Sequence record: MZ574432.2
Reading direction: 5' to 3' (one strand)
Length of the DNA stretch: 64,000 nt
The notes beneath the pieces are model-generated. The model had not been told where the DNA came from. It made no database searches and saw nothing but the letters and a program-made list of their open reading frames with translations. This document shows positions 391 through 62,422 of this stretch, piece by piece (positions within the stretch are counted from its first letter, which is position 1; every line of letters starts with the position of its first letter). The translations under genes were made by a program, and so were the position numbers.

Positions 391-409
391 TGTCAACAGC
401 TTTCTTGCA
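391..409 (-). promoter_or_regulatory. conserved 19-bp promoter element (TGCAAGAAAGCTGTTGACA)
   Basis: Exact motif on minus strand; 17-nt spacer then TAACTA. Confidence 0.85.
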
Positions 410-410
410 C

Positions 411-629
411 TTACTGGGATTCGTAATTGTCGTCGACTTCATCGAGCAGGGCGCGAAGCTCCCGACGAGCGTCGTGGTTGTTCATGATCTTCATGAGCAA
501 GGCCACGGCGCTGTCCTGGGTCGTGCGCCCCAGTTTGGTGGAGAGGAGGTTCCCCACCCACGCCACCAGGGTCACATACTTCAGGGTGCCCCGGACCGTG
601 ATAAGGGGCTTAGGACTCGGCAGCATCAC
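411..629 (-). CDS. hypothetical protein
   Basis: ORF fills gap between 610 and promoter element; start uncertain. Confidence 0.6.
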   Translation of the reverse strand: MMLPSPKPLITVRGTLKYVTLVAWVGNLLSTKLGRTTQDSAVALLMKIMNNHDARRELRALLDEVDDNYESQ

Positions 630-1332
630 CAGCCTGGGGCGTTTCGAAGGCCAGTTTCAGGACGTCGTCGACCTTGTCGGGCGCCAGCAGGCCTTGAGCG
701 ACGGCTTGCGCCAGGGCCTGCTCGCCCAGGCGCTTCTTGCCTAGTTCGAAGTAGGCCTCGATCTCGCCATAGGCGCGATCACGCATCTTGTCGGCCTGCT
801 CGGTGGCGCGGTCGACCAGATGCGGCAGGTTGCCCGTCGCCTCGCGCAGCGCCGTCTGGAGTTGTTCGAGAAGCTCGCGAAGCTCGGCCTTGCGCGGCGA
901 GCCGCCGTCGAGAATCTTTTGACACATGTCGACGGCTTCCTTGACGGCCGCCATGGCTGCCTGGGCGTCCCTGGCGATCGCCTTGCCGGCGCGCTCATGG
1001 CCGTCAGCCCGCTGGCTGGTCGGCGGCTCAGCCATGCCGACGTATTGGCCGCCGACCATGCGCCGCTGAATGGTGCAGGGCACGCCCTCGGTGCCGACGC
1101 CGGTGATCAGTTGCGCGAACTGCACTTCGGAAAGGGCGATCTGGATGATCTCGCGATGCCCAAAGAAGCGTGCGTCCACACCGCGTGTGTAGCGATCGGC
1201 CTCCACGACCTTCAGGGTCAGGTAATGACCCACAGGCCATTCGACGCCGACGAGGTTGCGTTCGCCGCTGGTGCGCAGAACCTGGACGCGTCCGAAGGAT
1301 TCGTGCGTTTCCTTGATCTCGTCGTCGGCCAT
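610..1332 (-). CDS. conserved phage hypothetical protein
   Basis: RBS CAGGAGAC; HESFG...SEVQFAQLIT...GVPCT pattern resembles a family seen in large phages. Confidence 0.8.
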   Translation of the reverse strand: MADDEIKETHESFGRVQVLRTSGERNLVGVEWPVGHYLTLKVVEADRYTRGVDARFFGHREIIQIALSEVQFAQLITGVGTEGVPCTIQRRMVGGQYVGMAEPPTSQRADGHERAGKAIARDAQAAMAAVKEAVDMCQKILDGGSPRKAELRELLEQLQTALREATGNLPHLVDRATEQADKMRDRAYGEIEAYFELGKKRLGEQALAQAVAQGLLAPDKVDDVLKLAFETPQAGDAAES

Positions 1333-1384
1333 GAGGTCTCCTGTGCGTTGCTCTTGAGGGAGGTTTACGACCCGCCCTCAAGGC

Positions 1385-1403
1385 TGTCAACAGTTTTCTT
1401 GCA
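1385..1403 (-). promoter_or_regulatory. conserved 19-bp promoter element
   Basis: TGCAAGAAAACTGTTGACA, 17-nt spacer, TAAACC. Confidence 0.85.
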
Positions 1404-1407
1404 GAAT

Positions 1408-1815
1408 TTAGTAGTGCTTGGACAGGAGCCCGCGCTGGTCCCAGATGTTCGGACGCGGCTGGATGTAGGGGTTACGCGGATCGTCCCAGGCCAGGGAGTA
1501 GTCCAGGCCGATGATCCTGGCGCAGTCGGCGCCGATCAGGAACCAGCCCATGTCCGAGCCGTGGCGGGGCCAGCCGTCGAGCGGTTCTGGGTAGGGCTCG
1601 ACCTGGACGAACAGCGCCTCGTCGTCCGGGTGCAGGGCGTAGGGACCGCCACCGACGCAGTGGACGACACGGCGGGCCTGCTCGGGCTTGAGGTCCTTCT
1701 GGCAGCGGCAGCACCAGACGTCGGTCTTGGGATCGCGCCGATAGTCAGGGTCCATCCACACCGCCCGATACGGGACACCGGGATGGAACTCCTGCACGAA
1801 CTTGGCCTTAGCCAT
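1408..1815 (-). CDS. hypothetical protein (Cys motifs)
   Basis: ORF in leftward gene chain. Confidence 0.7.
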   Translation of the reverse strand: MAKAKFVQEFHPGVPYRAVWMDPDYRRDPKTDVWCCRCQKDLKPEQARRVVHCVGGGPYALHPDDEALFVQVEPYPEPLDGWPRHGSDMGWFLIGADCARIIGLDYSLAWDDPRNPYIQPRPNIWDQRGLLSKHY

Positions 1816-2119
1816 TCTGGCGGCCCTTCCAGCGTGCGTCCAGATCGTCGGCCGTCACGAAGATTCGCTCGGCCTCGGCGCCGCCGTAAGGACGCTCGCA
1901 GATCAGGACGACACCCGGCTGCGCCAGGGCGGCCTTCGAGCCGTGCTCGCCGCCACCTTCGGAGCCGTACTGGCTCATGTGATAGGCCGAGACGCCGAAG
2001 GCCTCGGCGGCCTTGGCCTTCGATGTCGTCGCCACATAGGCCTCGCCCTGGCGCGAATTGCCGGGGATGGCCGGATGATAGTAGGTGATGTGGTAGACCT
2101 TGAGCTTGGCCATCAGCAC
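1808..2119 (-). CDS. hypothetical protein
   Basis: ORF overlapping neighbours in operon-like chain. Confidence 0.7.
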   Translation of the reverse strand: MLMAKLKVYHITYYHPAIPGNSRQGEAYVATTSKAKAAEAFGVSAYHMSQYGSEGGGEHGSKAALAQPGVVLICERPYGGAEAERIFVTADDLDARWKGRQNG

Positions 2120-2481
2120 GTACCCGAGGCAAGGAACTCGCTGGCGCGGTCCTTGTGCAGCGCGCCGGCCTTGTCCAGAGCCTCGGCGACCTCCGCCTTG
2201 ATCGGCTTGTAGCCGCGCTTGTCATAGTAGACAAAGTCGCGGGTCTTGCCGGGATTTTCCCGCGCCCACTGCGCGTCTTCGGCCTTCATGCGCGCCATCC
2301 AGGCCTCGGCGCTCTGCTCGTCCTCGAACAGGACAAAGCCGTCCGGGCGCGGACCCCAGCCGCTCTCGTACTCGGTGCCCTCGATCACGAAGGCGAAGTG
2401 ACGCGTCGGCTTGACCGGTGCAGATGGCGGTGCGTCCGTGCGGTCGGTCATCGAAGTGCCGGGCTGAAGCGTGCGAGGCAT
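2113..2481 (-). CDS. hypothetical protein
   Basis: Start moved to ATG at 2481 behind GAGGAGAC RBS. Confidence 0.7.
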   Translation of the reverse strand: MPRTLQPGTSMTDRTDAPPSAPVKPTRHFAFVIEGTEYESGWGPRPDGFVLFEDEQSAEAWMARMKAEDAQWARENPGKTRDFVYYDKRGYKPIKAEVAEALDKAGALHKDRASEFLASGTC

Positions 2482-2536
2482 CGAGGTCTCCTCTTGGTTG
2501 TCATACGAGAACACTGCTAAGGCCGCGAGAAGCCAG

Positions 2537-2555
2537 CGTCAACAGTTTTCTTGCA
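2537..2555 (-). promoter_or_regulatory. conserved 19-bp promoter element
   Basis: TGCAAGAAAACTGTTGACG, 17-nt spacer, TAGCAG. Confidence 0.8.
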
Positions 2556-2558
2556 AGC

Positions 2559-2696
2559 CTAGCCTGCCATCAGGTCGCGCTGGTATCGCCAGCCGTCCAG
2601 CCAAGACCAGCGGTCAAGATCAAAAAAGCCATAGGGGCAGGCGGATTGGGGCTGGCCCTGGGCGTAGGCGAATTGGCCCTGCTGGAACGGGTCCAT
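2559..2696 (-). CDS. ribosome modulation factor (Rmf)-like small protein, 45 aa
   Basis: MDPFQQGQFAYAQGQPQSACPYGFFDLDRWSWLDGWR fits the G-x2-A-x3-G...CPY...W-x2-GW pattern of Rmf-like proteins; start coupled to upstream stop (TAATG). Confidence 0.55.
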   Translation of the reverse strand: MDPFQQGQFAYAQGQPQSACPYGFFDLDRWSWLDGWRYQRDLMAG

Positions 2697-3085
2697 TACT
2701 CTAACCCCATGGCCTTGCGGTAAGGCGTCATCGACCAGCCCTGGGCCGCGACCGCTTCGCCCAGGTCCGCTGCGCAGCGCAGTGTGCAGAAGAACTCGTC
2801 GACGTAAGTCACGCCGTCCCAGACGGTGACCTTGTCGATGTACTCGCCGCCGGTCTCCTTGATGTAGATTTCTTCGTAGGGCAGTCCATGGTAGCGTTGC
2901 CAGGAGACAGACAGGACCGTGCCGTTGACCAGGGTCTGGACCTCGGCTTTGGACCGAGGATAGACCTTCGCCCGGTGCTCCTCGCCGTTCTGGGCCATCC
3001 GACCAAAGTAGAGCGTGTCGACGTACTTTCTGATCGGCTTGCCGCACGAGCGGCAGAAGGGCTGTTTTTCGCTTTGGAAGGTCAT
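2696..3085 (-). CDS. hypothetical protein with CxxC motifs
   Basis: ATGA overlap with upstream gene at 3082-3085; CRSC and FCTLRC. Confidence 0.75.
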   Translation of the reverse strand: MTFQSEKQPFCRSCGKPIRKYVDTLYFGRMAQNGEEHRAKVYPRSKAEVQTLVNGTVLSVSWQRYHGLPYEEIYIKETGGEYIDKVTVWDGVTYVDEFFCTLRCAADLGEAVAAQGWSMTPYRKAMGLE

Positions 3086-3807
3086 CCGAATTCCTTGGCT
3101 AGGGCGATCGCCTTCGACAGGCTTTCGGTCTCGAAGTTGGTCAGGGTGATCTGGCCAGTCTCGGCCTTGCACCGGATCGACTCCAGCGCCTCGACGAGGT
3201 CGGCCTTCTCCTGCTCCAGGGCGGCCTTGGCGGCCAGCCGGCGAGCAGCGGCCTCAACCTGCGCCGCTTTGGTCGCCTTGGCGTGTGCGAAGGCTGCATC
3301 CCACGACGGCAGGCTGCCGGCGATGTACGCCTCGTAGGCGCGCAGCAGCGCCAGTTCCTTGGCCTTGACGGTGCCGTAGTGAACACCGCTGACGGCCATC
3401 CCCGGCGAGATGTCATCCAGATCGGGCGCCGCGTCGAAGTTGGCGTCCAGGCTGACCGTGAGCGGTCTGATCTTCCACTCCTTGTCCCAGCCGTGGTCCA
3501 GGAGAAGGAAGGCGAACGGTTTGCCGTCGAGCATCGCCAGATTGGCGCTCTTGCGGCTGCGGCCTTCGGTCCAGGGCGTGGCTTTGAGATCAACCCCGAG
3601 CGCCTTGATAGCGCCCTTTGCGTAGACGCGGCTGCACTCGCTGCATTGGACATGCTTGGGGTCGGACGCCTTGCGGATCACGCCGCCGATCGAGTCGTCG
3701 CCGCAAAGCGTGCGCTCACGCATGCGCGGCTTGCCTGAGTCGCTATAGACGCCGTCCTGGTAGGACTCGGCGATGAGGTGCAGGTCGTATCGGCTGCTGC
3801 GGGCCAA
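3082..3807 (-). CDS. hypothetical protein
   Basis: TTG start behind GGAGG RBS, downstream of promoter at 3856. Confidence 0.75.
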   Translation of the reverse strand: MARSSRYDLHLIAESYQDGVYSDSGKPRMRERTLCGDDSIGGVIRKASDPKHVQCSECSRVYAKGAIKALGVDLKATPWTEGRSRKSANLAMLDGKPFAFLLLDHGWDKEWKIRPLTVSLDANFDAAPDLDDISPGMAVSGVHYGTVKAKELALLRAYEAYIAGSLPSWDAAFAHAKATKAAQVEAAARRLAAKAALEQEKADLVEALESIRCKAETGQITLTNFETESLSKAIALAKEFG

Positions 3808-3831
3808 GGAAGCCTCCGTGCTGTTCCTGGC

Positions 3832-4317
3832 CTAGATAGGAGCCAACGAACGGCGTGTCAACAGCTTTCTTGCAGAATGGCCGTACCAGCGCCAGAGCCG
3901 CTTGCCGATGATGTAGATCGACCCGGTGAAGACCAAGGTCAGTTGCAGGCTGTAGAGCACGTTGATCAGGAAGGTGTAGCGGTAATTGCTGATGTGGATC
4001 GGAAGCAGGGAGGCCTTGCCGGCCCAGAAGCCTAGGTGCAGCGCGCTTTGCGTGTAGAGCGAAAGCGCGACCACGCCGATCCAGTATCTAGGTCGGATGA
4101 AAAACATCACTCCGACAAGGCTGGCCTGGACAGCGTCGATCCAGACATAGACAAACAGCGAGGTGGAATCGACATAGAAGAACCGCATCAGAGCGCAGGC
4201 GCACCAGCTATAGCACAGCATGGTGGCGACGACCTGGAGACCCTTCTGCCAGGAGAACAGCGCTGCGACGCCCATGACGAGCGTCGCAGCGGCGAAGAAA
4301 TGCCCCCAGAACCCCAT
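3832..4317 (-). CDS. integral membrane protein (about 4-5 TM)
   Basis: Several hydrophobic segments; atypical codon usage; 3' end reads through the promoter element. Confidence 0.7.
   Translation of the reverse strand: MGFWGHFFAAATLVMGVAALFSWQKGLQVVATMLCYSWCACALMRFFYVDSTSLFVYVWIDAVQASLVGVMFFIRPRYWIGVVALSLYTQSALHLGFWAGKASLLPIHISNYRYTFLINVLYSLQLTLVFTGSIYIIGKRLWRWYGHSARKLLTRRSLAPI
3856..3874 (-). promoter_or_regulatory. conserved 19-bp promoter element
   Basis: TGCAAGAAAGCTGTTGACA, 17-nt spacer, TATCTA. Confidence 0.85.
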
Positions 4318-4320
4318 GCG

Positions 4321-4560
4321 TTACGGGATCGTCGGTTCGTCTTCGGGCGGCTTGTCGTTGCCACCCGAGCGCGCGACCGCGACATCCTTGATGCGCGGAC
4401 CAAAGACACCCGCCGCGTAGTTGAGCAGGACGTTGAGACGCTTGTGGATACGATCCACCGTCGCCTTGATTTCCGGTTGTTCGGCGACCTGCGCGTGCAG
4501 GGTCGCGAAGTCCTCGGCGATGGCGCCCACGAAGTCGATGGCCTTGTCGATGATGCTCAC
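4321..4560 (-). CDS. small hypothetical protein
   Basis: GTG start behind AAAGGGAGG RBS; amphipathic N-terminus, Pro/acidic C-terminus. Confidence 0.7.
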   Translation of the reverse strand: MSIIDKAIDFVGAIAEDFATLHAQVAEQPEIKATVDRIHKRLNVLLNYAAGVFGPRIKDVAVARSGGNDKPPEDEPTIP

Positions 4561-4624
4561 TGGAGCCTCCCTTTACTCAGAACGAGGACTGCGTATCAGC
4601 CCCGCTTGAGCGACGCGAGAGAAA

Positions 4625-5011
4625 TCATTGTGACGCCGCAGCTTTCGCCGCCTTGCGTGCTTTGACTTCGGCGGTCCGCTCAGCCATGAAGGCCTCGCCT
4701 TCGACGCGGGTGCGCCACGTCTCGCGATGCTCCAGCAGGAAGGCATAGCCGGCCTCCGAAAGGCGATAGACCTTCGAACCCTTCCGTCCACGGAAGGTCC
4801 TGTTGAGGTACTCGGGCAGGTTAACGTGCCCGCGCTGGCAGAAGTCCACCAAACCGCGCTTGGCCAGCTTGGCCAGGGTGCCGGAATGGTGCGAACCATT
4901 CGTGCCGCCGACCTCCTGGGTCGTATGCCACTTGATCGGGTCGTCCCGCCACAGCGGGGCCAGTTCGTTGAGCGTGTCCAGGTCCCGCTCGGTCAGGGGT
5001 TGCAAGGCCAT
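4625..5011 (-). CDS. putative winged-helix protein
   Basis: TLAKLAKRGLVDF...VYRLSEAG recognition-helix/wing-like pattern. Confidence 0.55.
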   Translation of the reverse strand: MALQPLTERDLDTLNELAPLWRDDPIKWHTTQEVGGTNGSHHSGTLAKLAKRGLVDFCQRGHVNLPEYLNRTFRGRKGSKVYRLSEAGYAFLLEHRETWRTRVEGEAFMAERTAEVKARKAAKAAASQ

Positions 5012-5012
5012 G

Positions 5013-5261
5013 TCAGTAGTCCATGTCCATGACGACGGTGAAGGCGACGCTGCCGTCGGTCAGGGTCTCCTTGACCACCTTGACGGCCTTGACCTCGCGC
5101 CCGGAACGGTCCTGGGCGTAGAACGACAGATTGTTCTCGGGGTCCTCGTTCTCGCAGAGGTCTTGAGCCGCTTGCAGGGCTTGGATCAGATCGTAGGTCC
5201 AACCCAGGCCCTCGCCGTCGTCGCCGGCCGTTTCGAAGATGGTTTCCTTGCTCATGGTCAC
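5013..5261 (-). CDS. small acidic hypothetical protein
   Basis: ORF in chain; start may be 5255. Confidence 0.7.
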   Translation of the reverse strand: MTMSKETIFETAGDDGEGLGWTYDLIQALQAAQDLCENEDPENNLSFYAQDRSGREVKAVKVVKETLTDGSVAFTVVMDMDY

Positions 5262-5842
5262 TCCTTGCTGGCGATCGCCAGGGCCTCGGCTTCAAGGCGC
5301 GCGGCCTTGTCGCGAAGGACGCCGGCGCCTTGGGACGGCGAAAGCAGCCGGGCGGTGTCGCGCAGTTCCTGGGCCGAGCGGCGCAGGCTGGCGATCTCGA
5401 TGTCGATCTGGTTGGACGGTTCGGCGGGCACCAGGATCACCTGGACCTTGCGGTCGTAGTCACGCGACTGCTTGCGCACCTTGGTGCGGATCGGCTTGCG
5501 CTTGACGCCGTCATGGCTGTCGTGGTGGAAGGTGTAGAGCCACGTCACCATCCCCGGCGTCTCGCTGGGGACCCGCATGTCCTTGCGACGCAGCGGGAAC
5601 TTTGGCGGCTCGATCCGCGTCCAGCGATCGTCGAAAGGGATCGCCGGCTCAAAGGTCTTGGGACCACCCTCGGGAGGGCTCTCGCGGCCGATCTTGACCC
5701 CGGATGGATCGAAAAAGGCCACGTCCATCAGAACGTCGTCGCCGCACCAGTAGGATTGACGCACCTTGCCGATGGTGATGTTGCCGTCGTGGACCTCGGC
5801 GACCCAGTCGCCTTGGACGATCGGCAGTACCTTCTCGGTCAT
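5258..5842 (-). CDS. hypothetical protein
   Basis: GGAG RBS, downstream of promoter at 5899. Confidence 0.75.
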   Translation of the reverse strand: MTEKVLPIVQGDWVAEVHDGNITIGKVRQSYWCGDDVLMDVAFFDPSGVKIGRESPPEGGPKTFEPAIPFDDRWTRIEPPKFPLRRKDMRVPSETPGMVTWLYTFHHDSHDGVKRKPIRTKVRKQSRDYDRKVQVILVPAEPSNQIDIEIASLRRSAQELRDTARLLSPSQGAGVLRDKAARLEAEALAIASKE

Positions 5843-5880
5843 GATGCGGGTGCTCCTGCGGTGGAAGTTGCGGGTCTTCT

Positions 5881-5899
5881 ATGTCACGAAAAGTGACAT
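5881..5899. promoter_or_regulatory. perfect palindrome ATGTCAC-N5-GTGACAT (candidate operator) in promoter spacer
   Basis: ATGTCACGAAAAGTGACAT fills the spacer between -35 and -10. Confidence 0.6.
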
Positions 5900-5917
5900 G
5901 TCAACTCATTTCTTGCA
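5899..5917 (-). promoter_or_regulatory. conserved promoter element (variant)
   Basis: TGCAAGAAATGAGTTGACA, 17-nt spacer, TAGAAG. Confidence 0.75.
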
Positions 5918-6067
5918 CAGTTGCCCGGCCACATAGACCGCCACGCCGACGCCCAGCAGGCCCCAGATGAGGGTCGAGCCATGCAGCACGATACGCGAGT
6001 GGGACACGTAATAGACGAGGCCAATGGCGATAATAGCGGCAATCACCAAGCCAAACCTGCTGTTCAT
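5906..6067 (-). CDS. small membrane protein, 53 aa (not in ORF track)
   Basis: CAGGAG RBS; MNSRFGLVIAAIIAIGLVYY...LCKK, two hydrophobic helices; stop lies inside the promoter element. Confidence 0.7.
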   Translation of the reverse strand: MNSRFGLVIAAIIAIGLVYYVSHSRIVLHGSTLIWGLLGVGVAVYVAGQLCKK

Positions 6068-6210: not shown

Positions 6211-6678
6211 ATGCAGGCGTCAATGAGTCGATACACGAGCCTTTTTCAAGAGGCGGCCAAGGTGGTCGACGAAACAGAGCAGCACCCAGGTCAGTCGATT
6301 CCGGGCTACTGGGAAATGTCCGATGAGACCTCATGGCCCGTCCTCATCGGCGTGATCATGAGCAACGCCATCAACGAGGTCTGCCGTAGGCAGCCAGATT
6401 GCGTGTTCGAGCACGCCCTGGAGCGCCTTGTCGAGGTGACATCAGGCGTGCCGATGGTCGTCAAGGGCGATCCGGCCCAGATCGCGGCCAATCGACTACG
6501 GCTGGCGGCCCAGGCGAATTTCGAGCGGGTTGAAACCGCCGTCGAGCGCTTGACCCGTCTGGCCTCCCTGGCGGCCGGCGAGTTGAAGAAGCTAGCCCCA
6601 AACGACGTCGAGTTGGAGAGACTCGCCAAGGACATTCGCGTGGCCATCGGCGACGCAAAGCATGTGAGGTTGCAGTGA
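6211..6678 (+). CDS. hypothetical protein
   Basis: First rightward ORF; start could be 6223. Confidence 0.7.
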   Translation: MQASMSRYTSLFQEAAKVVDETEQHPGQSIPGYWEMSDETSWPVLIGVIMSNAINEVCRRQPDCVFEHALERLVEVTSGVPMVVKGDPAQIAANRLRLAAQANFERVETAVERLTRLASLAAGELKKLAPNDVELERLAKDIRVAIGDAKHVRLQ

Positions 6679-7250
6679 CGACGACGAAGGTGAAGTTCAA
6701 GGGCTCCAAGCGGCTGGAGCGCCGGCGGCAAGCTCGCCTGATCCAGGCGAGCGATCGGGCCAAGGCGGTCGTCAGCCCCTATAGCCGCGCGCAGCCGGTC
6801 AACAGGCCGTCCCTGCGGCACTTGGACAGCATACCGTCGGTGACGTCCCTGGCGGGTATTCTCGAAAAGCGCGCCAAGCCCTCGCCAACGCCGTTCTACA
6901 AGGACCTGCACTGGGTATCGCCGGCCAAGGATGGCGCCGCCGCCATGGCCATGAAGGTCACCGAGATGCCCAAGCCCCATCTCCTGGCTGCGATCAGCCA
7001 TGAGCGGGACAAGCGCATTGCCTTCACGCGGATGGCGAGCGCATCATTCCCAACCGCGATGAACAAGGAGGCGCGCACCCGCGCCCAGAAAGCCGCCGCC
7101 ATCCATTGTGCGTGGCTGGTCTGCCTTGAAGCCGAGGCCATGCGCCGCGACCCCTCCTACCAGCAGTTCATCACCCAGAAGGGTCTTAGCCTGACCCAAC
7201 CCACGCCGGCGGAGATCGCCGCGCTGCCGTCCGTCTTCGTGGGCTCCTAA
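6675..7250 (+). CDS. basic hypothetical protein
   Basis: GTGA overlap with upstream stop. Confidence 0.7.
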   Translation: MTTTKVKFKGSKRLERRRQARLIQASDRAKAVVSPYSRAQPVNRPSLRHLDSIPSVTSLAGILEKRAKPSPTPFYKDLHWVSPAKDGAAAMAMKVTEMPKPHLLAAISHERDKRIAFTRMASASFPTAMNKEARTRAQKAAAIHCAWLVCLEAEAMRRDPSYQQFITQKGLSLTQPTPAEIAALPSVFVGS

Positions 7251-7255
7251 AGCTC

Positions 7256-8302: not shown

Positions 8303-8313
8303 GTAGCTTTCCC

Positions 8314-54497: not shown

Positions 54498-55193
54498 AGA
54501 ACTGGCGCGCCTCTCGCCGGCCGCCCGCAAAATCTACACGGCCCTGCACGCCGGCGCCAAGCTCACCATCACGATCGACAACGACGCGTGGTGGTTGAAC
54601 GAGGACCTGGGCCAGAAGGACGAAGACGGCTATCCGATCGAGGAACTGCTGCTCAAGGGCGGTGGGCCTTACGGGGCTGACGTGCTCGACTATCTGGCCG
54701 AAATCCTGGGCATCGAGACCGAGAGCGTCTGATGCAGGTGGAACTTACCCAAGAGGAAATGGCGTCCTGGCCGCCACAGGCGTTCGAGACCCTGTCTCAG
54801 TTGAGGCACGGCTGCAAGATCGAGTTCGGTCCGGGCTGGATCACCTTCAAAGTCGTCGACAAGGAGCCGGCCGATGATGAACGTCGCTGATTTCCGCGAT
54901 CCTCGTGACCCCGAGGGTCGCTCCTATCGTCAGGTGAACGCCGCTCTCGTCCACGGCCTGCCTCTGGGCGCTTTGGTCGAAGTCAACGACACCGGCGCGC
55001 GGCTCTTTGTGGGGCTGCACACCCGAGACTGCGATCAGACGCCCCTCTATTCGCTCGCACCTGAGCCGGCGCCGATTGAGTTCGATAGTGACTCTTTCGC
55101 CTGGAACATGTGGCGTATGAAATTCGTCAATGGCTTTTCCGAGCCCAGCCTGACGCTGATCAATTCTAATCCCCTCATCAAGGAAGACTGACC

Positions 55194-55568
55194 TTGGGCA
55201 TGAACTCTATCGCCTATGGCGGCATCGGGCTGGTCGTCGATCTCGACGCCCATGATCTGGACGAAGACCTGCGCTACGAACTGGATCACCGCCTGAGCCA
55301 CTCCGACCGTGATGGTCTCGCCTGCCGTCGGGTCGGCGCTTTTGCTGCCGACGCCGGCGAGCACGTCTACCTGCTCTATGTCGGGACCAACTCGGACATG
55401 GACTACCCGCCGGCGCGCAAGGCCAAACCCGTCCCCGACCTCGCAGACGCCCGTACCAAGGTCGAGGCCTATCTGCGTTCGATCGAGGGCGTCACCGAAG
55501 AGATCGCGCAGGCCCTCTTCGTCGAAGAGAACTTCGGCTTTCACGTCCAGCTTTACATGGACAACTAG
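55194..55568 (+). CDS. hypothetical protein, probable paralog of the next gene
   Basis: IAYGGIGLVVDL...FGFH. Confidence 0.7.
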   Translation: MGMNSIAYGGIGLVVDLDAHDLDEDLRYELDHRLSHSDRDGLACRRVGAFAADAGEHVYLLYVGTNSDMDYPPARKAKPVPDLADARTKVEAYLRSIEGVTEEIAQALFVEENFGFHVQLYMDN

Positions 55569-55570
55569 CC

Positions 55571-56014
55571 ATGGCGGTCGACTACTCGCCGATCGCTGGC
55601 ATCGGCATCCTGCTGGACCTGGGCCGACTGAAGACCCCAGGCGCGGACGAGCACTCGTGCGCGCACCCCGAGCGCCTGGGCCAGAAGTTCTGCCCCACGT
55701 GCGGCGCGCAGGTGTGGAGCCGGGCGGGCACGAACAGCGAAAGGGTCTTCGACGTCACCATCGAGCTTGAGTCCATGGCCCTACCCGAGCACATGGTTCT
55801 GGGCTTCTACGACTACGACAAGGACATCTGGTTCCTGGGTTTCGGGGTTAGGTTCGATCGGAACGAGGCCTTTGGCCCGTTGCCCCTCCCGAACCTGAAG
55901 GCGCTCGACGACAGTCTCCAAGCGATCCTGGCGCGCCTGACCATGCTCGATGATCCCAGCGTGATCGTCGTACCAGACTCGTTTGGCTTCCACGCCGCCA
56001 TGCCGGGCTGGTGA
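55571..56014 (+). CDS. hypothetical protein with CPTC insert, probable paralog of the previous gene
   Basis: PIAGIGILLDL...FGFH. Confidence 0.7.
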   Translation: MAVDYSPIAGIGILLDLGRLKTPGADEHSCAHPERLGQKFCPTCGAQVWSRAGTNSERVFDVTIELESMALPEHMVLGFYDYDKDIWFLGFGVRFDRNEAFGPLPLPNLKALDDSLQAILARLTMLDDPSVIVVPDSFGFHAAMPGW

Positions 56015-56294
56015 TCATGTGCGGCTGTGTCAATGTCGAGATGGGCTCCTACGCCAATCAGGAAGCGCGTGTCGCGCCGGGCGGCGGGCTGGTCGGCATC
56101 GACCGCTGCCTGCTCGATGAGGTCGAGATGCTCTGGCGTCTGGGGATCGTCACAGTAGAAAGCTGCTGCGGGCACAACGTCGCCGCGCCTTATATCGCCG
56201 TCGCCCAGGGCCATGAGCCGCTCATGCGCGCTCTAGGCTATCAGCTTGATCCCCGCCTGGAGGATCGCCCCGAAATCTTCGTGCCCAAGTCCCT

Positions 56295-56579
56295 ATGACC
56301 AAACCCCGCCTCCAGACGCGCAACCTTCTCCTGGCTTTGAAGGAGCAGCTTCCGCTCGCCCGGTTGTGGCGCGTCTTCTTCGTGACGCGCAACGGCTGGG
56401 GCCTCTTCCACGTCAACAGCCATGTCAACCAGGGATCAGGCAAGCCCAAGGTGGCCTACAACACCAAGGCCACCGCCGAGAAGTCCGCCCAGGCGATGGC
56501 CAAGAAGCACGGCGGGGTGTTTCGGCCCTATAAATGCGCCTTCTGCGATGGGTACCACATTGGCAAGAACCGCGCCTGA
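56295..56579 (+). CDS. small zinc-finger-like protein
   Basis: KVAYNTKATA...YKCAFCDGYH. Confidence 0.7.
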   Translation: MTKPRLQTRNLLLALKEQLPLARLWRVFFVTRNGWGLFHVNSHVNQGSGKPKVAYNTKATAEKSAQAMAKKHGGVFRPYKCAFCDGYHIGKNRA

Positions 56580-57221
56580 CGAGATCGGCAAAGAGATCGG
56601 CGAAGATTGGTCGATAAACCCTATCAAGCCACTGATCTGGCTGGAGAATTCCCTTCCGTATGATCGGCAAATAACCGCCACTGAGTTCGCGGAACTCTAT
56701 CTCTGCTCCCCCTGGATCGACAATGACCCCTCCTGACCAACACCGCAACCGAGCCCGCGTGATCGCCCTGGGCGGCCTGGAGCCCTGGGAACGGACCGCC
56801 ACGCCGACCTATGCGGTGATGCACAAGGAAGACACCGGCCGCGTGGTGGTGACCGAGACCACCAAGGCGCCGCGCCAGCGGACCAACGAGTTCGATTTCA
56901 TCGCCGATCTGGACCGGCGCTATGCGCCTCGGTTCTTCCTGGTCGACGCCAGCCTTCCCAAACATTTCCTGGACGCCTTCCGATCCGAACTGGGCCATCG
57001 CGGCATCCCGATGCGGACCATCGCTCAGAGCCATCCGGGACATGAGCGTCTTGACTTGATCCATCACCTCTTCCGCTTGGAGCGCCTAGACGTCAGCAGG
57101 GCGGTTGATCTCGCCCACCCTCATGCGGCCGACGCCGTATCCCTGGGCTTCATCCACCTCAACGCCCCGCCCCCGGTCGTCTACCACTTCGCGCCGGACC
57201 GATCGGGCCGTCTCGGCCGAT

Positions 57222-57240
57222 GGTGAGAATCCGGTTGACA
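57222..57240 (+). promoter_or_regulatory. promoter element (variant)
   Basis: GGTGAGAATCCGGTTGACA containing the upstream TGA stop. Confidence 0.65.
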
Positions 57241-57620
57241 ACCTAAGATCATGCGCCTATATGCCGCACCAAGTCATCAATCTTGGCACGGAGGCATGGA
57301 TCATGGTACGTCATCTTTGGTGCTCGATGTTCCACTGGCTCCGCTGGGAACTGCTCGACGCGCCCGACAAGGACAATCGCCGCTGGCGATGCACGGAATG
57401 TGGCGAGCACCACCATGTTGAGAACTAGGCCTCACTCGAAGCTGGCCGATGTCCTTCTTCGCGAGATCGTGCTAAAGCGCGGCCGGCGTTGGGAGCTACT
57501 GACGCCGACCGAGAAGCTGATGGGCCATGCCCTGCGCCGCCGCAAGCTGGTGCGCTTCTTCGAAGCCGCCGACGGCCGCTGGATCGAAGCCACTCTGGAC
57601 GGCGTCCTGGCGGCCTCCTG

Positions 57621-57833
57621 ATGCCCTGGGACATGAAGGCCCAGCACCGCAAGCGAAGCTGCGAGGGCAAGGTCCGCTACGCCACCGAAGCCCTGGCGCG
57701 CGCCGGCGCCCAGGACATGCTCAAGCGAACCGGTCGCCGGCGCGGCGGCGTCTATCCGTGCGAGTTCTGCGGCCTATGGCACGTGTCCAGCGAGGGCAAG
57801 GGTCGCTACGTCGTTGTGCAAGAAAACTGTTGA
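57621..57833 (+). CDS. small zinc-finger-like protein, related to 56295-56579
   Basis: KVRYATEALA...YPCEFCGLWH; ends VQENC* inside promoter element. Confidence 0.7.
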   Translation: MPWDMKAQHRKRSCEGKVRYATEALARAGAQDMLKRTGRRRGGVYPCEFCGLWHVSSEGKGRYVVVQENC

Positions 57834-57835
57834 CA
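57817..57835 (+). promoter_or_regulatory. conserved promoter element
   Basis: TGCAAGAAAACTGTTGACA. Confidence 0.85.
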
Positions 57836-57895
57836 AGATCGTCAGGCGGGCCGATATAGAGGGCCTCGACGACGACAACGAAAGGCCCGCCGCAC

Positions 57896-60034
57896 ATGCT
57901 GGAGACCAGCCCTCTTTGGGAAGCCATCGCTCTCTGGGAAGAGATCACCGGCGTGGCCGTGCCCGGCGAGGACAATCGCTTCAAAGGCTCGTGGGGCAAC
58001 TACGAGGTCCACAAGACCTACGAGGAACTGCGCGACACCCTGGAGCTTGATCCCTCCGAGGTCACGACGAACCTGATGTTCAACATCTTCGTCAAGGAGT
58101 GGCTGGGCAAGCAGAAGTTCGACCTGCTGTCGCTGACCAATGATCCTCAGGCCTACCTCGACAAGACCGTCAAGCCGCGCAAGCTGCTCGACATCCTCAA
58201 TCGCGCGGAAATCATCGAGGCGCGTGACGAGTTCCTGGAAACGTTGCAAGCCACAGCCGTCAAGTACGGCGCCGACCAGCGCGAAGACCTCCAGAAGACC
58301 CTGGGCCAGCACGATCTGGTCGCGATCCTGCGCCGCGATGCGCTGAAGGCGGCCAACCGCCTGCGCATCCACCAGTTCACCGCCGGCGACTCCGAAGCGG
58401 CCGACTACAAGCCCGTCTACGTCAAGACCGTCCACCAGTGGTGGAACATCAACTCGCTGCTCGATGCGGCGATGAAGATGCCGTCGGGCGTGTCGCTGAA
58501 CCTGATCAAGGACCCGGACGTCTACCAGTCCTTCTACTGCTTCTGCATCCGCAATGGCGGCAACCTCTTCATCCTGACCGACGCGCCCGAGCACGCTCAC
58601 CCGCTGCACGGCCTGTTCACCCGCCGGCCCGAGCGCGCCTACGAGCAGCGCGTCTATCAGGCGTGGTTCCCCTATGATCTCCTGGGCCTGGAGTGGGACG
58701 AGGAGGCCGAGCAATACTACCAGACGGCCTCGGAAGTCACGGCCCTGACCGCCTATCAGAACCAGCAACTGCCGCTGAAGCCGTTCAATGAACTGCCGCC
58801 GGCCGAGTTCCTGTGGTGCTCGATGATGCTCGACCTGATCGTCGAGAAGTTCTGGCGCCAGAACTATCAGGCCAAGGCCCTGTCCTACACCGGCGAGATG
58901 CTGGTGATCGAAAACCGCCTGGAGACGGCCGCAAGTTCGGCTAACCTGCCCGTCGTCAACTACGAGCGCCTGAACCTGCCGGCCTTGTCCCTGACGGACA
59001 TGCGCTCGGACGTCCTGGGCGCCGAGGCGATCGGCAAGGGCTACCACCAGCCCAACAAGTGGCTGGAGGACCGCTTCATGGACAAGGTCCCCGAGTCGGT
59101 CCTGAACCTCGTGGCCAACGCCGATCGCATGCTACTGCTCGACCGCAAGACGGGCGAGGTGGAGACCCAATCGCGCGAGTTCGCCAAGCAGTTCAAGGCG
59201 ATCCCGAAGATTTTCGATCGTGACCGCGATCAGATGCTGGCCGGCCGGGCGCAGTTGGAGGTGCTCAACCCCACGCGCTTTGGCACCCGCGAGGAACTGG
59301 ACAACGACCGCAAGTTCATCGCCCGCTACAACTTCGCCAGCGAAATCCAGCGTCTGGCCAAGGAGGAGTTCGAGGCCCGTAAGGACGAGATCAAGTCCTG
59401 GTGGAAGACGAGCCTGCGCAAGAACCTGCCCAACCTCCTGGCCTATGCCGGCTGCAAGGTCCTCTGGGCCGAAGCCGACATGAAGGGTTCCAACGACAGC
59501 TTCGACATGATCCGCAACGGTGGCGGGCGCGGCATGCACCTGGACACCCACGCTGCGGCGTCCCTGGGCGCCGACAAGACCGGCCGCATCCGCAAGGTGC
59601 TGCACACCTTCGCCGATCGCCATGACATCCAGGCCTTCAGCTACGAGACCGCCGGCTTCTCGTCGACCAATCTCGGCGGCTACGAGCAGCGCCGTGGCTA
59701 CCTCTGCGCAGTCAATGACACCAAGGCCAGCTACATGCAGACCTTCCATCCGGCCAATGCCGAGGAACTGGCGCTGCTGGCCGGCATCGGTATCGAGGAC
59801 CTGCCGGACGTGCTCCAGCACTGGACCCTGGCCGATCCCTACGACGGCAACCACATCCTCTCGCGCATTGATCCGCTGAACTGGCGGGTGAGCAATCCCT
59901 GGCTGAAGCTGAACTTCCAGGTGGTGCTGCCGCTCTCGATGCGCGCCGAGGCCAAGCTGGTCGCCCGCAAGCCGCCCCTGACCTACCTCTGGCCCGACGA
60001 CAAGATCAGCGAGCACGGCCGCCCCTTCCTCTAA
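57896..60034 (+). CDS. large hypothetical protein, 712 aa
   Basis: Longest plus-strand ORF; host-like codons; directly behind a promoter element; no motif recognised. Confidence 0.85.
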   Translation: MLETSPLWEAIALWEEITGVAVPGEDNRFKGSWGNYEVHKTYEELRDTLELDPSEVTTNLMFNIFVKEWLGKQKFDLLSLTNDPQAYLDKTVKPRKLLDILNRAEIIEARDEFLETLQATAVKYGADQREDLQKTLGQHDLVAILRRDALKAANRLRIHQFTAGDSEAADYKPVYVKTVHQWWNINSLLDAAMKMPSGVSLNLIKDPDVYQSFYCFCIRNGGNLFILTDAPEHAHPLHGLFTRRPERAYEQRVYQAWFPYDLLGLEWDEEAEQYYQTASEVTALTAYQNQQLPLKPFNELPPAEFLWCSMMLDLIVEKFWRQNYQAKALSYTGEMLVIENRLETAASSANLPVVNYERLNLPALSLTDMRSDVLGAEAIGKGYHQPNKWLEDRFMDKVPESVLNLVANADRMLLLDRKTGEVETQSREFAKQFKAIPKIFDRDRDQMLAGRAQLEVLNPTRFGTREELDNDRKFIARYNFASEIQRLAKEEFEARKDEIKSWWKTSLRKNLPNLLAYAGCKVLWAEADMKGSNDSFDMIRNGGGRGMHLDTHAAASLGADKTGRIRKVLHTFADRHDIQAFSYETAGFSSTNLGGYEQRRGYLCAVNDTKASYMQTFHPANAEELALLAGIGIEDLPDVLQHWTLADPYDGNHILSRIDPLNWRVSNPWLKLNFQVVLPLSMRAEAKLVARKPPLTYLWPDDKISEHGRPFL

Positions 60035-60043
60035 GGACTTTCG

Positions 60044-60487
60044 ATGCAAGACGAACTTCGCCTCTACGCCATCACCAGCCTCGAAGCCATCCAAGCCATG
60101 GGTGGCAATCGAGGCAAGCTTGGAGCCCAGGCCGGCCACGCATACCTGCATGCGTGGTTCGACGCCTATGAGCGCTTCCCCAAGGTCGCCAAGGCCTACG
60201 CCAAGTCGGGGGCGGCCGTTAAGGTTACCCTGGTCGTGCCGACCACCGACGAGCTTGTCGGCCTTGCCCGCCTCTTCGAGGCCGAGTGCGGCGACGTCCT
60301 GGTGGTGCCCACGACCGAGGACCTGCGCCTCCTGGAGCCGGTCTTCGAGGCCGAGTGCGGCGTCACCCTGGTCACCGACGCTGGCCGCACGGTGGTCAAG
60401 CCCGGCACCACCACCTTCCTGGGCGTGGGGCCAATCACCAAGGAGCGCTTCGCCGAACTGGCGCCGGGTATTGTTCCGCTCTGCTGA
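60044..60487 (+). CDS. peptidyl-tRNA hydrolase, Pth2 type, with internal duplication
   Basis: GKLGAQAGHA, KVTL, VTDAGRT, PGTTTFLGVGP. Confidence 0.85.
   Translation: MQDELRLYAITSLEAIQAMGGNRGKLGAQAGHAYLHAWFDAYERFPKVAKAYAKSGAAVKVTLVVPTTDELVGLARLFEAECGDVLVVPTTEDLRLLEPVFEAECGVTLVTDAGRTVVKPGTTTFLGVGPITKERFAELAPGIVPLC
60230..60367 (+). repeat. imperfect 69-bp in-frame tandem duplication
   Basis: LVVPTTDELVGLARLFEAECGDV / LVVPTTEDLRLLEPVFEAECGVT; TCTTCGAGGCCGAGTGCGGCG identical in both units. Confidence 0.85.
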
Positions 60488-60490
60488 CCG

Positions 60491-60509
60491 TGCAAGAAAA
60501 CTGTTGACA
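60491..60509 (+). promoter_or_regulatory. conserved promoter element
   Basis: TGCAAGAAAACTGTTGACA, 18-nt spacer, TAGAAG. Confidence 0.85.
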
Positions 60510-60562
60510 CTCCTTCTGGGCCTCGGCTAGAAGGGGTGCATCAACAGCCAACGGAGACACCC

Positions 60563-60967
60563 GTGCAGCGCACCATCACCGCCCGCATCATCGAATTGAC
60601 GAGCACCATCGCCAATCCGAGCTACGATCGTCGCTGCCGGTACGGCATCGGCGCGATCGAGAAATACTCGGCGGGTTCGCGGCTGGTGTTCAAGACCCTC
60701 CAGGTCGAAGACGAGCCCACCGAGTACACGATCTGCACGCCGGGCGACGGCCTCAACTGGACCTCCGATCGCAAGATCGTCGACGCGGTCCGCGCGGCCT
60801 CGATCGACGTCGAGCCCCAGTCCTGGATCGAGTGGTGCGCCACGACCGACGAGATCGGGCGCGGCATCGACATGCGGGTCCTGGAAATCCTCTATCACTC
60901 CCACCCCGAGATCGTGAAGTCCGCGCACGCCGACGCCGTCGCCCGCTACGACGAGTTCCAGGACTGA
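60563..60967 (+). CDS. hypothetical protein
   Basis: GTG start behind CGGAGAC RBS. Confidence 0.65.
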   Translation: MQRTITARIIELTSTIANPSYDRRCRYGIGAIEKYSAGSRLVFKTLQVEDEPTEYTICTPGDGLNWTSDRKIVDAVRAASIDVEPQSWIEWCATTDEIGRGIDMRVLEILYHSHPEIVKSAHADAVARYDEFQD

Positions 60968-60968
60968 C

Positions 60969-61340
60969 ATGGCCAAGCAGCGCTGGATCAAGGACCGCTA
61001 TGGCGACAGCCGGCGCGCGCCCATGACGATCAACGACGCCATTGTCGTGATCCTGGAGCACATGCAAAGCTCGGTGGCGGCGCTTGCGCGCACGGACCAT
61101 CGTAGCGTCTATAATCCCCAAGGCCTGCCCGAGAAGTCGATGGCATCGACAAAGGTCTTTGGGGTGCGCTACTGGCAAGCGGCCGAGCGTTTGATCAAGG
61201 AAGGCGCCGTGATCGCGGCCAACGGCAGCCCCGACTGCCGCGACGACTTCCGTAACCCCTTATACATGGTTGCGGGGCCTAACTACGCCAAGGCGGTGAA
61301 AACCTACCTGGGCGATGTTGGCGTGCAAGAAAACTGTTGA
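60969..61340 (+). CDS. hypothetical protein
   Basis: Ends VQENC* inside promoter element. Confidence 0.7.
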   Translation: MAKQRWIKDRYGDSRRAPMTINDAIVVILEHMQSSVAALARTDHRSVYNPQGLPEKSMASTKVFGVRYWQAAERLIKEGAVIAANGSPDCRDDFRNPLYMVAGPNYAKAVKTYLGDVGVQENC

Positions 61341-61342
61341 CT
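61324..61342 (+). promoter_or_regulatory. conserved promoter element
   Basis: TGCAAGAAAACTGTTGACT, 18-nt spacer, TAGGTT. Confidence 0.8.
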
Positions 61343-61393
61343 CACGCGGTCGGCCTAGTCTAGGTTCTAGTTCTCACGAACGAGGAGACCCAG

Positions 61394-62422
61394 ATGGCCA
61401 AGCCCCGCTTTGAAGTTCTCGACGCCCTGCGCGGTGTAGCCGCCATCGCCGTCGTGCTCTACCATCTGGGGCTGGCCACCAAGACGCCCCTGGCCCGTCA
61501 TGGCTGGGTCGCGGTCGACTTCTTCTTCATGCTGAGCGGGTTCATCATCGCTCATGCCTACGACAAGAAGCTGGCCGGGGACCTCACCACCAAGACCTTC
61601 ATGATCGCCCGCCTCAAGCGCCTATGGCCCCTGCATTTGGTAGGCATGGCGCTGGGCCTTATCGCGTACGCCGCCCTGGCTCTGTCGCAGGGCAAGGCCG
61701 ACACCCTGCCGACCTTGACGCTTCTGGCGCTCGCCGGCGCGGTCTTCGCACCCATCGTGGCTCAGGCCGGCGTCACCGCCTTCGTGCTCAATGTGCCGGC
61801 GTGGTCCTTGTTCTACGAGTTGATCGCCAACCTCGCCTACGCGGCCGGTTTCAAGCTGACCAGCAAGCCGGTCCTGGCGGGCCTGTCTATCCTGGGTCTG
61901 CTGGGCATCGGCGCCAACGCCCTGGTCTACGGCATGCTCGATGTGGGCTGGTCCTCGTCGAACCTCGTGGGTGGTCTGGCGCGCATCCTCTTTGCCTTCC
62001 CGCTGGGCGCGCTGATCTATCGCCTCCACGTCGAAGGCCGCTTCAACGCGGTGCGCAAGGTATCGCCGACGATCCTCATCGTCCTCTTCGTTGCGCTGAT
62101 CTGGGCGCCGGCTCAGCACGACACCCTGGTGGACATGCTGGTCATCGCCTTGGTCTTCCCGCCGTTCCTGATCCTGGCCGCCCAGGCGCGCTTTTCCAAG
62201 CCCTCGCCGCTGTTGATCGCGCTGGGTGACCTCTCCTACGCCATCTACGCCACCCACATGCCGACGCTGCTGATCGCTTCGATGATCGCTGGCGCTCTGG
62301 GCGCGCGCGCCTTGACGATCCTCATCTCGATGCCGCTGGTCCTGGTTGTCGCCTGGGTGGCCCAGAAGTGGACGACGCCATCCTGCAAGAAAGCTGTTGA
62401 CACCCGTTTCGCGCGCGCTTAA
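61394..62422 (+). CDS. acyltransferase family 3 (OafA/YrhL-like membrane O-acyltransferase)
   Basis: LDALRGVAAIAVVLYH, VDFFFMLSGF, RLKRLWP, NVPAWSLFYE, LGDLSYAIY..H; about 10 TM. Confidence 0.9.
   Translation: MAKPRFEVLDALRGVAAIAVVLYHLGLATKTPLARHGWVAVDFFFMLSGFIIAHAYDKKLAGDLTTKTFMIARLKRLWPLHLVGMALGLIAYAALALSQGKADTLPTLTLLALAGAVFAPIVAQAGVTAFVLNVPAWSLFYELIANLAYAAGFKLTSKPVLAGLSILGLLGIGANALVYGMLDVGWSSSNLVGGLARILFAFPLGALIYRLHVEGRFNAVRKVSPTILIVLFVALIWAPAQHDTLVDMLVIALVFPPFLILAAQARFSKPSPLLIALGDLSYAIYATHMPTLLIASMIAGALGARALTILISMPLVLVVAWVAQKWTTPSCKKAVDTRFARA
62384..62402 (+). promoter_or_regulatory. conserved promoter element
   Basis: TGCAAGAAAGCTGTTGACA, 17-nt spacer, TAAGAA. Confidence 0.85.

Follow-up and report, generated by a model that had tools for sequence, protein, structure and literature searches.

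The window, that is, the whole stretch of DNA analysed here, comprises 64,000 nucleotides (nt) and corresponds with a 100% match to positions 186001-250000 of the record MZ574432.2 of Caulobacter phage BL47, a siphovirus of the genus Bertelyvirus with 64% G+C. The BL47 record is 326,794 bp long with terminal repeats of 30,174 bp, and a unit genome of 297 kb was assembled from it for the whole-genome count of motifs. About 140 small genes lie in the window, nearly all of them annotated as hypothetical, and they form two diverging blocks, one on the minus strand (positions 1-6067) and the other on the plus strand (6211-64000). Neither a polymerase nor a sigma gene is named in the annotation of the record. 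The subject of this study is a 19-bp element repeated in these blocks, in which a 13-nt block directly precedes TTGACA. A preliminary description had listed about 20 copies of it, anchored on the stop codons of the preceding genes, and had proposed that they are promoter elements and at the same time junctions where gene modules are gained or lost.

A search of the window with TGCAAGAAARCTGTTGACA, allowing up to three mismatches, retrieved 18 sites at exactly the coordinates listed before, and none in 100 shuffles. The remaining two listed copies, at 18891 and 57222, are degenerate with six mismatches (GAGAAnCCGGTTGAC) and count as real members because their orthologues in phage CcrSC are nearer to the consensus, so that the number of about 20 copies is borne out. 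When the 13 nt on the 5' side of every TTGAC in the window were scored, the scores were bimodal, with 18 sites at 10-13 of 13, two at 7-8 and the rest at 7 or less. Five copies lie on the minus strand in the minus-strand gene block and 15 on the plus strand in the plus-strand block.

Two other phages, CcrSC and CcrBL9, share about 72% identity with BL47 in this region and provide a footprint of the element. Each of the 20 sites has a positional orthologue in each of the two phages. Identity is 0.9-1.0 at motif positions 2, 4-8, 10 and 12-17 and 0.78 and 0.85 at positions 1 and 18, while positions 0, 3, 9 and 11 are variable and the flanks and the spacer fall to 0.25-0.55. The selected sequence is yGCnAGAAAnCnGTTGACA, and this comparison of the three phages shows that the selection on the 13-nt block is sequence-specific.

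All copies are co-oriented with the next gene, and at most sites 46-60 nt separate the end of TTGACA from the start codon. TTGAC is invariant at all 60 sites of the three phages, and its sixth base is A at 17 of the 20 BL47 sites, which fits TTGaCgS. A TA dinucleotide stands 17-18 nt after the -35 at 54 of the 60 sites in BL47, CcrSC and CcrBL9, against 47 of 682 control sites, the controls being TTGAC sites without the upstream block; for CTA at the same spacing the counts are 41 of 60 and 11 of 682. For BL47 alone, TA was found 17-18 nt after TTGACA at 18 of 20 sites, which confirms the earlier remark that a TA(G/A/T) is what is kept there. Co-orientation, the fixed distance to the start codon, a -10 at the right spacing and strong purifying selection together uphold the proposal that the repeats are promoter elements.

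The main sigma factor of Caulobacter, sigma-73, has the consensus TTGaCgS at -35 and GCtANAWC at -10 (PMC8144410, PMC13004042). Genome-wide start-site mapping in Caulobacter recovered hardly more than a TTG and one A/T position, and placed the start 34-37 nt after the motif's first base (PMC4287350). The -10 derived from the phage sites, cCTA(A/G)(A/G)W, fits GCtANAWC and is therefore ordinary for a Caulobacter host. The preliminary description had taken this -10 to be weak and in need of compensation by whatever binds the 13-nt block; that premise is not supported, since the phage -10 matches the sigma-73 consensus. The impression of weakness arose because an E. coli-type consensus demands T at the sixth -10 position, and an E. 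coli-type promoter scan with this requirement found no promoter in 20 kb. Promoter strength has thus to be judged against the host's own consensus.

From these data we consider it quite probable that each repeat is the upstream half of a BL47 early promoter, and that these promoters form a family read by the RNA polymerase of the host carrying sigma-73, its main sigma factor. Each unit would consist of yGCnAGAAAnCnG, the abutting TTGACA, a variable spacer of 17-18 nt and a -10 of the host type. Transcription is predicted to start about 35 nt after the first T of TTGACA; between this point and the start codon would lie a short leader rich in CAAC and then a GGAG ribosome-binding site. The early timing of the promoters is inferred from the location of the copies in the terminal repeat and in small-gene arrays, from the host-type consensus, indirectly from the CtrA-type boxes next to the terminal-repeat copies (see below), and from the gene gp250c (L035:23169-23621). 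This gene is located in the block served by copies of the second class described below, and it encodes a Cro/CI-type regulator with 43% identity to its homologue TgrL, that is, gp216 of phage phiCbK. An early factor with its peak at 15 min after infection, TgrL reportedly represses genes of the host, among them the holdfast inhibitor gene hfiA (PMC10688885). As an observation on the predicted leaders, the stretch about 30-45 nt after each TTGACA is rich in CAAC or ACAAC just 5' of the GGAG ribosome-binding site at most sites.

At the level of the unit genome, about 65 copies were found with up to four mismatches, 20 of them in the window, and they fall into two classes. About 33 of them, designated class I, are in the terminal repeat, without exception on the plus strand. 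About 30 others, designated class II, are found at 157-284 kb among small genes of unknown function; they include the 20 window copies and combine the same 19-mer with variable spacers. The region of 36-157 kb, which carries the structural, lysis and replication genes, has a single weak match at 36189. Within the window, two tightly packed arrays of plus-strand genes, 36258-57221 (21 kb) and 6211-16803 (10 kb), hold no 19-mer at all. In a few gaps there, for example near 13795 and 50773, a plain TTGACA occurs without the upstream block, and such sites may represent a second, simpler promoter class.

From 3400 to 30174 of the terminal repeat every small gene is preceded by the same stereotyped unit. 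It begins with a terminator hairpin and a T-run, continues with GTTAACC..TTAAC..GTTAAGGTTAAC repeats, which resemble CtrA boxes, and an A-rich stretch, and then reaches the 19-mer. The spacer after it contains a (C)GCAT-N9-ATGCG dyad, and GACAAAGG, the ribosome-binding site and the ATG come next; the dyad looks like a class-specific operator. CtrA-binding sites are known in the terminal repeats of phiCbK-like phages, CcrSC included, and in these related phages the boxes are known to drive terminal-repeat genes (PMC9437464). The class I 19-mers agree with this system in lying just downstream of TTAAC-type repeats. They differ from it in that PMC9437464 describes CtrA boxes and not the 19-mer, the window copies have no boxes, and the phiCbK repeat is without the 19-mer. 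At 19249-19286 of the terminal repeat two motif copies, one on each strand, are also arranged head to head so that their upstream ends overlap, and the minus-strand copy has no annotated minus-strand gene at the usual distance.

The relation of the repeats to stop codons, which had been regarded as their anchor, was also examined site by site. At nine window sites the upstream stop lies 1-6 nt before the motif, often within TAA or TGA plus ATTC. At four sites (5899, 16804, 18891 and 57222) it falls inside the 5' half of the motif, and for 5899 and 16804 the stop is formed by the variable motif positions (AAA-TGA and TGC-TAG). The TGA inside TTGACA is the stop at four sites (22061, 22371, 57817 and 61324), and at three others (3856, 24731 and 62384) the gene reads through to the TAA or TAG of the -10 region. 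The copy at 32574, with its upstream stop 48 nt away, is indeed the exception it had been said to be. The peptides reported to be shared by the ends of unrelated proteins (VQENC*, CKK*, CKKAVD, RKKAVD and MQESS*) are all confirmed.

For copies of this 19-mer in the terminal repeat, the distance from the previous stop is 27-250 nt, mostly 90-185 nt, with terminator and CtrA-box-like repeats between the two where such a gap exists; only three copies there (7625, 12305 and 21150) abut or overlap a stop. The anchoring on stops therefore holds for the listed window sites and not as a general property of the motif. Stop contact is a by-product of gene packing: owing to the dense packing of class II, upstream frames run up to or into the predicted promoter, and the latter supplies the stops because it is the only A/T-rich sequence at the junction in a genome with 64% G+C. 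The stops supplied in this way in turn account for the shared tail peptides.

Regarding what contacts the 13-nt block, we propose that the block would raise or control promoter use via a sequence-specific contact. The most economical candidate would be the host polymerase itself, through the C-terminal domain of its alpha subunit and region 4 of sigma, because the AGAAA tract lies at the position of the proximal subsite of an UP element. An UP element is an A/T-rich tract at about -40 to -60 which raises transcription through alpha, and in E. coli its proximal subsite, AAAAAARNR at -46 to -38, is bound by the alpha C-terminal domain. In the phage units AGAAA stands at about -44 to -40, directly 5' of the -35 as an A-tract of an UP element would and at a constant spacing to it. 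By this analogy, the fixed spacing and the position of AGAAA favour a contact by the polymerase itself. The phage block differs from the UP element in having invariant G and C next to and within the tract. No definition of UP elements for Caulobacter was found in the literature searched.

A tentative alternative is that the block is the site of a dedicated protein and not of the polymerase, be it a phage early shut-off protein, an injected protein or a host activator. The pattern is specific and asymmetric, with G1, C2, G5, C10 and G12 invariant, the block directly abuts the -35 in all copies, and the multi-copy motif occurs in one phage genus only, all of which speaks for such a protein. Some shut-off is also indicated by the early transcripts of phiCbK, which fall after 15 min (PMC10688885). 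However, the block has no dyad symmetry and no candidate protein is at hand for it. Moreover, it is present in both classes, including the terminal-repeat genes that are presumably expressed first, so that an activator would have to pre-exist in the cell or the virion.

Three known binding sites were compared with the 19-mer and set aside. The published matrix of TgrL requires a conserved CAAC core and does not fit; only the CAAG part of the element resembles it, and the first A of CAA is variable in the 19-mer. A likeness to a sigma-54 promoter on the opposite strand (TGTCAAC...TTGCA, by eye) lacks the GG, has a spacing of 8 instead of 5 and would be antisense to the genes. The likeness to the IHF consensus on the opposite strand hinges on the TTGA of the -35 and was taken as coincidence.

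A part of the copies is associated with predicted stem-loops. TTGACA plus 50 nt was predicted to fold more stably than shuffles, with mean z scores of -1.4 in BL47, -1.95 in CcrSC and -1.6 in CcrBL9, and z was below -2 at 7-9 of the 20 sites per phage. The clear cases are 22061, 32574, 16804, 26207, 60491 and 1385, in which the 5' arm is the -35 or the spacer, and the remaining sites have no stem-loop. At 22061 a hairpin of 17 pairs followed by UUUUC begins in TTGACA, and at two of its pairs the three phages differ in both partners. The spacers at 16804 and 26207 can pair with the ribosome-binding site of the gene that follows, and at 30923 and 28586 the complementary stretch takes differing spacer positions between phages. 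Transcripts from a unit's own promoter would start downstream of the 5' arm, therefore the stem-loops could form only in RNA coming from upstream. They would terminate this upstream RNA (22061) or hide the ribosome-binding site in it (16804 and 26207), and thereby might insulate each promoter unit. A combined scheme, in which an injected or early protein recognizes the 13-nt block and switches about 65 early promoters jointly while the promoter-embedded stem-loops serve as an insulation device, is conceivable but on balance rather unlikely. If true, it would mean a regulatory architecture like that of the PeSL elements of T4-type phages, with an independent origin in an alphaproteobacterial siphovirus.

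The window was further analysed for the proposed role of the repeats in recombination. Genes were called on the basis of codon usage; 51 annotated stops were checked, and the caller recovered every one. Collinear chains of orthologues were then built among the three phages and each interval between consecutive orthologues was classed. Between BL47 and CcrSC, 6 of 26 indel or replacement intervals carry the motif with a background of 20/119 (odds ratio 1.7, p 0.38); between BL47 and CcrBL9, 6 of 33 with a background of 20/118 (odds ratio 1.1, p 0.79); and between CcrSC and CcrBL9, 3 of 23 with a background of 23/179 (odds ratio 1.0, p 1.0). A junction-level variant of the test gave odds ratios of 0.6-1.05. 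About four fifths of the gene gains and losses are at junctions which have no promoter and at which neighbouring genes share a few bases.

RB23 is about 99% identical to BL47 over window positions 1-49000, and none of the four indels between the two in the window (11079-11627, 55200-55569, 57455-57595 and 60960-60967) is at a motif. Near 49-50 kb the divergence from RB23 rises from about 1% to 5-20%, and the mosaic boundary lies inside a promoter-less gene array, not at a motif; the divergence of the segment concerned, 49000-64000, suggests that it was exchanged with a relative further removed. The motif flanks none of the 12 BL47-specific blocks, and across the 64 kb the three phages show neither a gain nor a loss of a promoter copy. 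Thus the check set beforehand, that indel breakpoints would map to the motif, gave no significant enrichment in any of the three phage pairs, and the proposal that the repeats are junctions for the gain and loss of modules is not borne out in the window, with odds ratios of 1.0-1.7, p of at least 0.38 and all 20 sites positionally conserved. The predicted promoters behave as stable landmarks and not as places where gene exchange is concentrated.

The terminal repeat provides a partly different case. In BL47 it contains three tandem amplifications that are absent from RB23 and C2, namely 454 bp in two copies, 1429 bp in two copies and 885 bp in five copies, at terminal-repeat positions 14972-15879, 21635-24577 and 25300-30040, and these explain a repeat of 30,174 bp versus about 25 kb. 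The crossover of the 1429-bp duplication took place in CATCTT right after the 19-mer and two variable bases, leaving a hybrid promoter at record position 23110. The other two amplifications used either no motif, as at the junction of the 454-bp duplication, or gene homology of 322 bp, the five-fold 885-bp amplification having crossed over in the 5' leader and the start of a paralogous gene. Promoter copies can therefore serve unequal exchange where the shared sequence is long, which is an occasional event and not a system.

We consequently regard it as improbable that the repeats form mobile cassettes of the PeSL type, in which promoter repeats would be the preferred points of homologous recombination for the insertion, deletion and swap of modules and for the excision of circles. 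Such a system would agree with the PeSL-like architecture of the units, namely an early promoter which has an A-rich tract upstream, reaches from a stop codon to a start codon and may carry a stem-loop over its -35 and -10 or between them (PMC2839356). It would also agree with the crossover of the 1429-bp duplication at a promoter copy, and with five clean CcrSC-specific insertions next to window motifs. The latter are five of nine such insertions (at 391, 2537, 5899, 36239 and 61324), a subset picked post hoc with the pooled tests being null, and no claim is based on it. Against the cassettes stand the non-significant motif counts of 6/26, 6/33 and 3/23 with about 80% of the events at promoter-less junctions, the BL47-specific blocks (0/12), RB23 indels (0/4) and mosaic boundary away from the motif, the constancy of promoter copies among the three phages, and the two terminal-repeat amplifications that arose by other means. 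Besides, the window copies share only 19-23 bp.

It is very improbable that a sigma factor or RNA polymerase of the phage itself reads the motif as a middle or late promoter. Large phages often encode transcription factors of their own and most BL47 genes are unannotated; however, a TTGACA followed at 17-18 nt by a host-type -10 is typical of the main host sigma factor, no gene for such a protein is annotated in the record, and the structural, lysis and replication modules are free of the motif, which clusters in the terminal repeat and in small-gene arrays, where early genes usually sit. That the repeats are a DNA-level signal unrelated to transcription, such as a Chi-type hot spot or a replication or packaging signal, is hardly credible in spite of their high copy number and strong conservation, since their orientation flips with gene direction at the divergence near window position 6100 and they keep a fixed distance to the ribosome-binding site and start codon as well as a -10 partner, features not to be expected of such a signal.

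Several points weigh against the reading as host-read early promoters that are stable and partly insulated by stem-loops. The copies at 22061 and 22371 in BL47 have no TA-type -10. For the activity and the early timing of the promoters the evidence comes from sequence and from a phage that belongs to a different genus. The five invariant G/C positions of the 13-nt block are unusual for an UP element bound by the alpha subunit, and the confinement of the multi-copy motif to Bertelyvirus is unfavourable too, as an optimal target of the host polymerase might be expected in other Caulobacter phages. The breakpoint tests, with 23-33 events per pair, are modest in power, so that an enrichment of two- to three-fold could hide in them, and the stem-loop statistics come from mononucleotide shuffles and from three phages only, two of which are close relatives.

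Host-polymerase early-promoter families are found in phages T4, with early promoters carrying UP-like A-tracts, SPO1, with the host-takeover promoters of its terminal redundancy, and T5, with its pre-early and early promoters, and promoters of this type are used immediately after injection. The BL47 repeats are like these families in that dozens of near-identical, presumably strong promoters with conserved positions beyond the two hexamers are placed in terminal repeats and small-gene arrays. They are distinguished by a consensus that suits sigma-73 of Caulobacter, including a GCtANAWC-type -10, and are known here from sequence. The closest likeness in layout concerns the PeSL elements of the T4-type phages RB49/phi1, T4/PST and KVP40/nt-1 (PMC2839356, PMC4122927). 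Common to both are an early promoter for the host sigma factor, predicted to be strong in BL47, an A-rich tract 5' of the -35, a ribosome-binding site, the span from stop to start and the concentration among small genes of unknown function. A stem-loop that covers the -10 or separates it from the -35, as in the T4-type elements, is predicted at only 7-9 of the 20 sites per phage. The stem-loop of the T4-type elements acts as a terminator or attenuator (PMC2839356, PMC4122927). The BL47 units, in contrast, belong to a siphovirus of an alphaproteobacterium with 64% G+C, their upstream block is a specific 13-mer with invariant G/C and not a plain A/T-rich tract, and in the window the endpoints of indels between relatives are not enriched at the elements. 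Integron cassettes also present small-gene arrays separated by a repeated sequence. However, the BL47 motif lacks dyad symmetry, no integrase flanks the arrays, the sole annotated tyrosine recombinase (gp229) is merely preceded by a promoter copy, and each BL47 repeat is a predicted promoter of its own, whereas integron cassettes share one.

The kind of element is thus familiar, that is, extended-consensus early promoters read by the host polymerase with PeSL-like stem-loops, and no description of the 19-mer itself was found in the literature searched. Scans of the viral collection found it in multiple copies only in CcrBL9 and CcrSC, and other contigs gave single matches at chance level. With a degenerate consensus in the bacterial genome collection, there were among the matches listed only scattered singles in unrelated organisms, which are uninformative on host promoters. 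The terminal repeat of phiCbK was found to be without the 19-mer, so that the published time course of phiCbK infection cannot be transferred site by site.

These results provide a first working map of the predicted early transcription units in the giant Caulobacter phages of Bertelyvirus, whose genes are almost all of unknown function, with about 65 predicted start sites. The compact and strongly conserved module would be usable as a promoter in Caulobacter, as a resource for annotation and engineering. They would also extend the promoter-plus-stem-loop design of T4-type phages to an unrelated phage group, as a second and independent instance, and they illustrate that a likeness in design need not mean the same role in gene shuffling. 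The features of the individual window sites are collected in Table 1.

Table 1. Copies of the 19-mer, read as predicted promoters, and predicted stem-loops in the window (spacings in nt after the -35)
Position	Strand	Feature	-10 region	Remarks
391-409	minus	Predicted promoter, exact 19-mer (upstream element and -35)	TAACTA at 17 nt	gp276c start 47 nt after -35; orthologous in CcrSC and CcrBL9
1385-1403	minus	Predicted promoter, 19-mer	TAAACC	Start codon 52 nt after -35; spacer and -10 within stem-loop
2537-2555	minus	Predicted promoter, 19-mer with -35 TTGACG	TAGCAG	Extra genes after promoter in CcrSC and CcrBL9
3856-3874	minus	Predicted promoter, 19-mer within gp285c 3' end	TAG (TATCTAG)	gp285c reads through and stops at -10 TAG
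5899-5917	minus	Predicted promoter, 19-mer variant AAATGAG	TAGAAG	TGA is gp290c stop; dyad in spacer
16804-16822	plus	Predicted promoter, 19-mer variant TGCTAG	TAAGCA at 18 nt	TAG is gp311 stop
16819-16874	plus	Predicted stem-loop		Spacer right after TTGACA (GGCCTCCTCG) pairs with Shine-Dalgarno region (CGAGGAGGCC); -30 kcal/mol, z about -5; in all three phages
18891-18909	plus	Predicted promoter, degenerate copy (AGTGAGAAACCGGTTGACG)	TAATGT	CcrSC orthologue nearer to consensus
22061-22079	plus	19-mer copy, promoter activity uncertain	No TA-type -10	TTGACA supplies TGA stop of gp322
22075-22116	plus	Predicted terminator-like hairpin, then U-run		Begins inside TTGACA of 22061; -31 kcal/mol, z -4.6 to -5.3; 2 compensatory pairs
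22371-22389	plus	19-mer copy	No TA at 17-18 nt in BL47; CTAGAT there in CcrSC and CcrBL9	TGA of TTGACA is gp323 stop
24731-24749	plus	Predicted promoter, 19-mer within gp326 3' end (tail RKKAVD...)	TAG (TAGCTA)	Stop of gp326 is -10 TAG
26207-26225	plus	Predicted promoter, 19-mer	TAAGGT at 18 nt	Start codon 51 nt after -35
26226-26270	plus	Predicted stem		Spacer (CTCCTCGGCG) with Shine-Dalgarno region (CGCCGAGGAG); z about -3.4
28586-28604	plus	Predicted promoter, exact 19-mer	TAAAGG	Start codon 53 nt after -35
30923-30941	plus	Predicted promoter, 19-mer	TAAGAC at 18 nt	
32574-32592	plus	Predicted promoter, exact 19-mer	CCTAGAAC, best GCtANAWC match	Sole window copy far (48 nt) from upstream stop
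32588-32625	plus	Predicted stem-loop		5' arm is the -35 itself (TGACACGCC...GGCGTGTCA), -10 in loop; z -4.4 BL47, -6.2 CcrSC, -5.8 CcrBL9
36239-36257	plus	Predicted promoter, 19-mer, GATAAC variant	TACCCA	Variant kept in all three phages; last copy before 21-kb motif-free stretch
57222-57240	plus	Predicted promoter, degenerate copy (GGTGAGAATCCGGTTGACA)	TATATG	Spacer and -10 identical in three phages
57817-57835	plus	Predicted promoter, exact 19-mer	TATAGA at 19 nt	TGA of TTGACA ends gp403 (tail VQENC*)
60491-60509	plus	Predicted promoter, exact 19-mer	GCTAGAAG	Stem-loop from -35 across -10
61324-61342	plus	Predicted promoter, 19-mer with TTGACT		TGA ends gp407 (tail VQENC*); precedes acyltransferase gene
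62384-62402	plus	Predicted promoter, exact 19-mer within 3' end of acyltransferase gene gp408 (tail CKKAVD...)	TAA (TAAGAA)	Stop of gp408 is -10 TAA

Some minor observations concern single genes and their annotation. A copy of the predicted promoter at L035:7771-7789 (record position 157771) lies 56 nt 5' of gp229, which is annotated as a putative tyrosine recombinase; nothing points to an action of this enzyme on the 19-mer. Possible annotation slips in the BL47 record were seen at window positions 16850-16955, 12929-13180 and 22869-23141. The reading frames of RB23 gp284 and gp306 have no annotated counterpart in BL47, and for gp312, whose annotated start is at 16955, the probable start is a TTG near 16875, as in gp293 of RB23.

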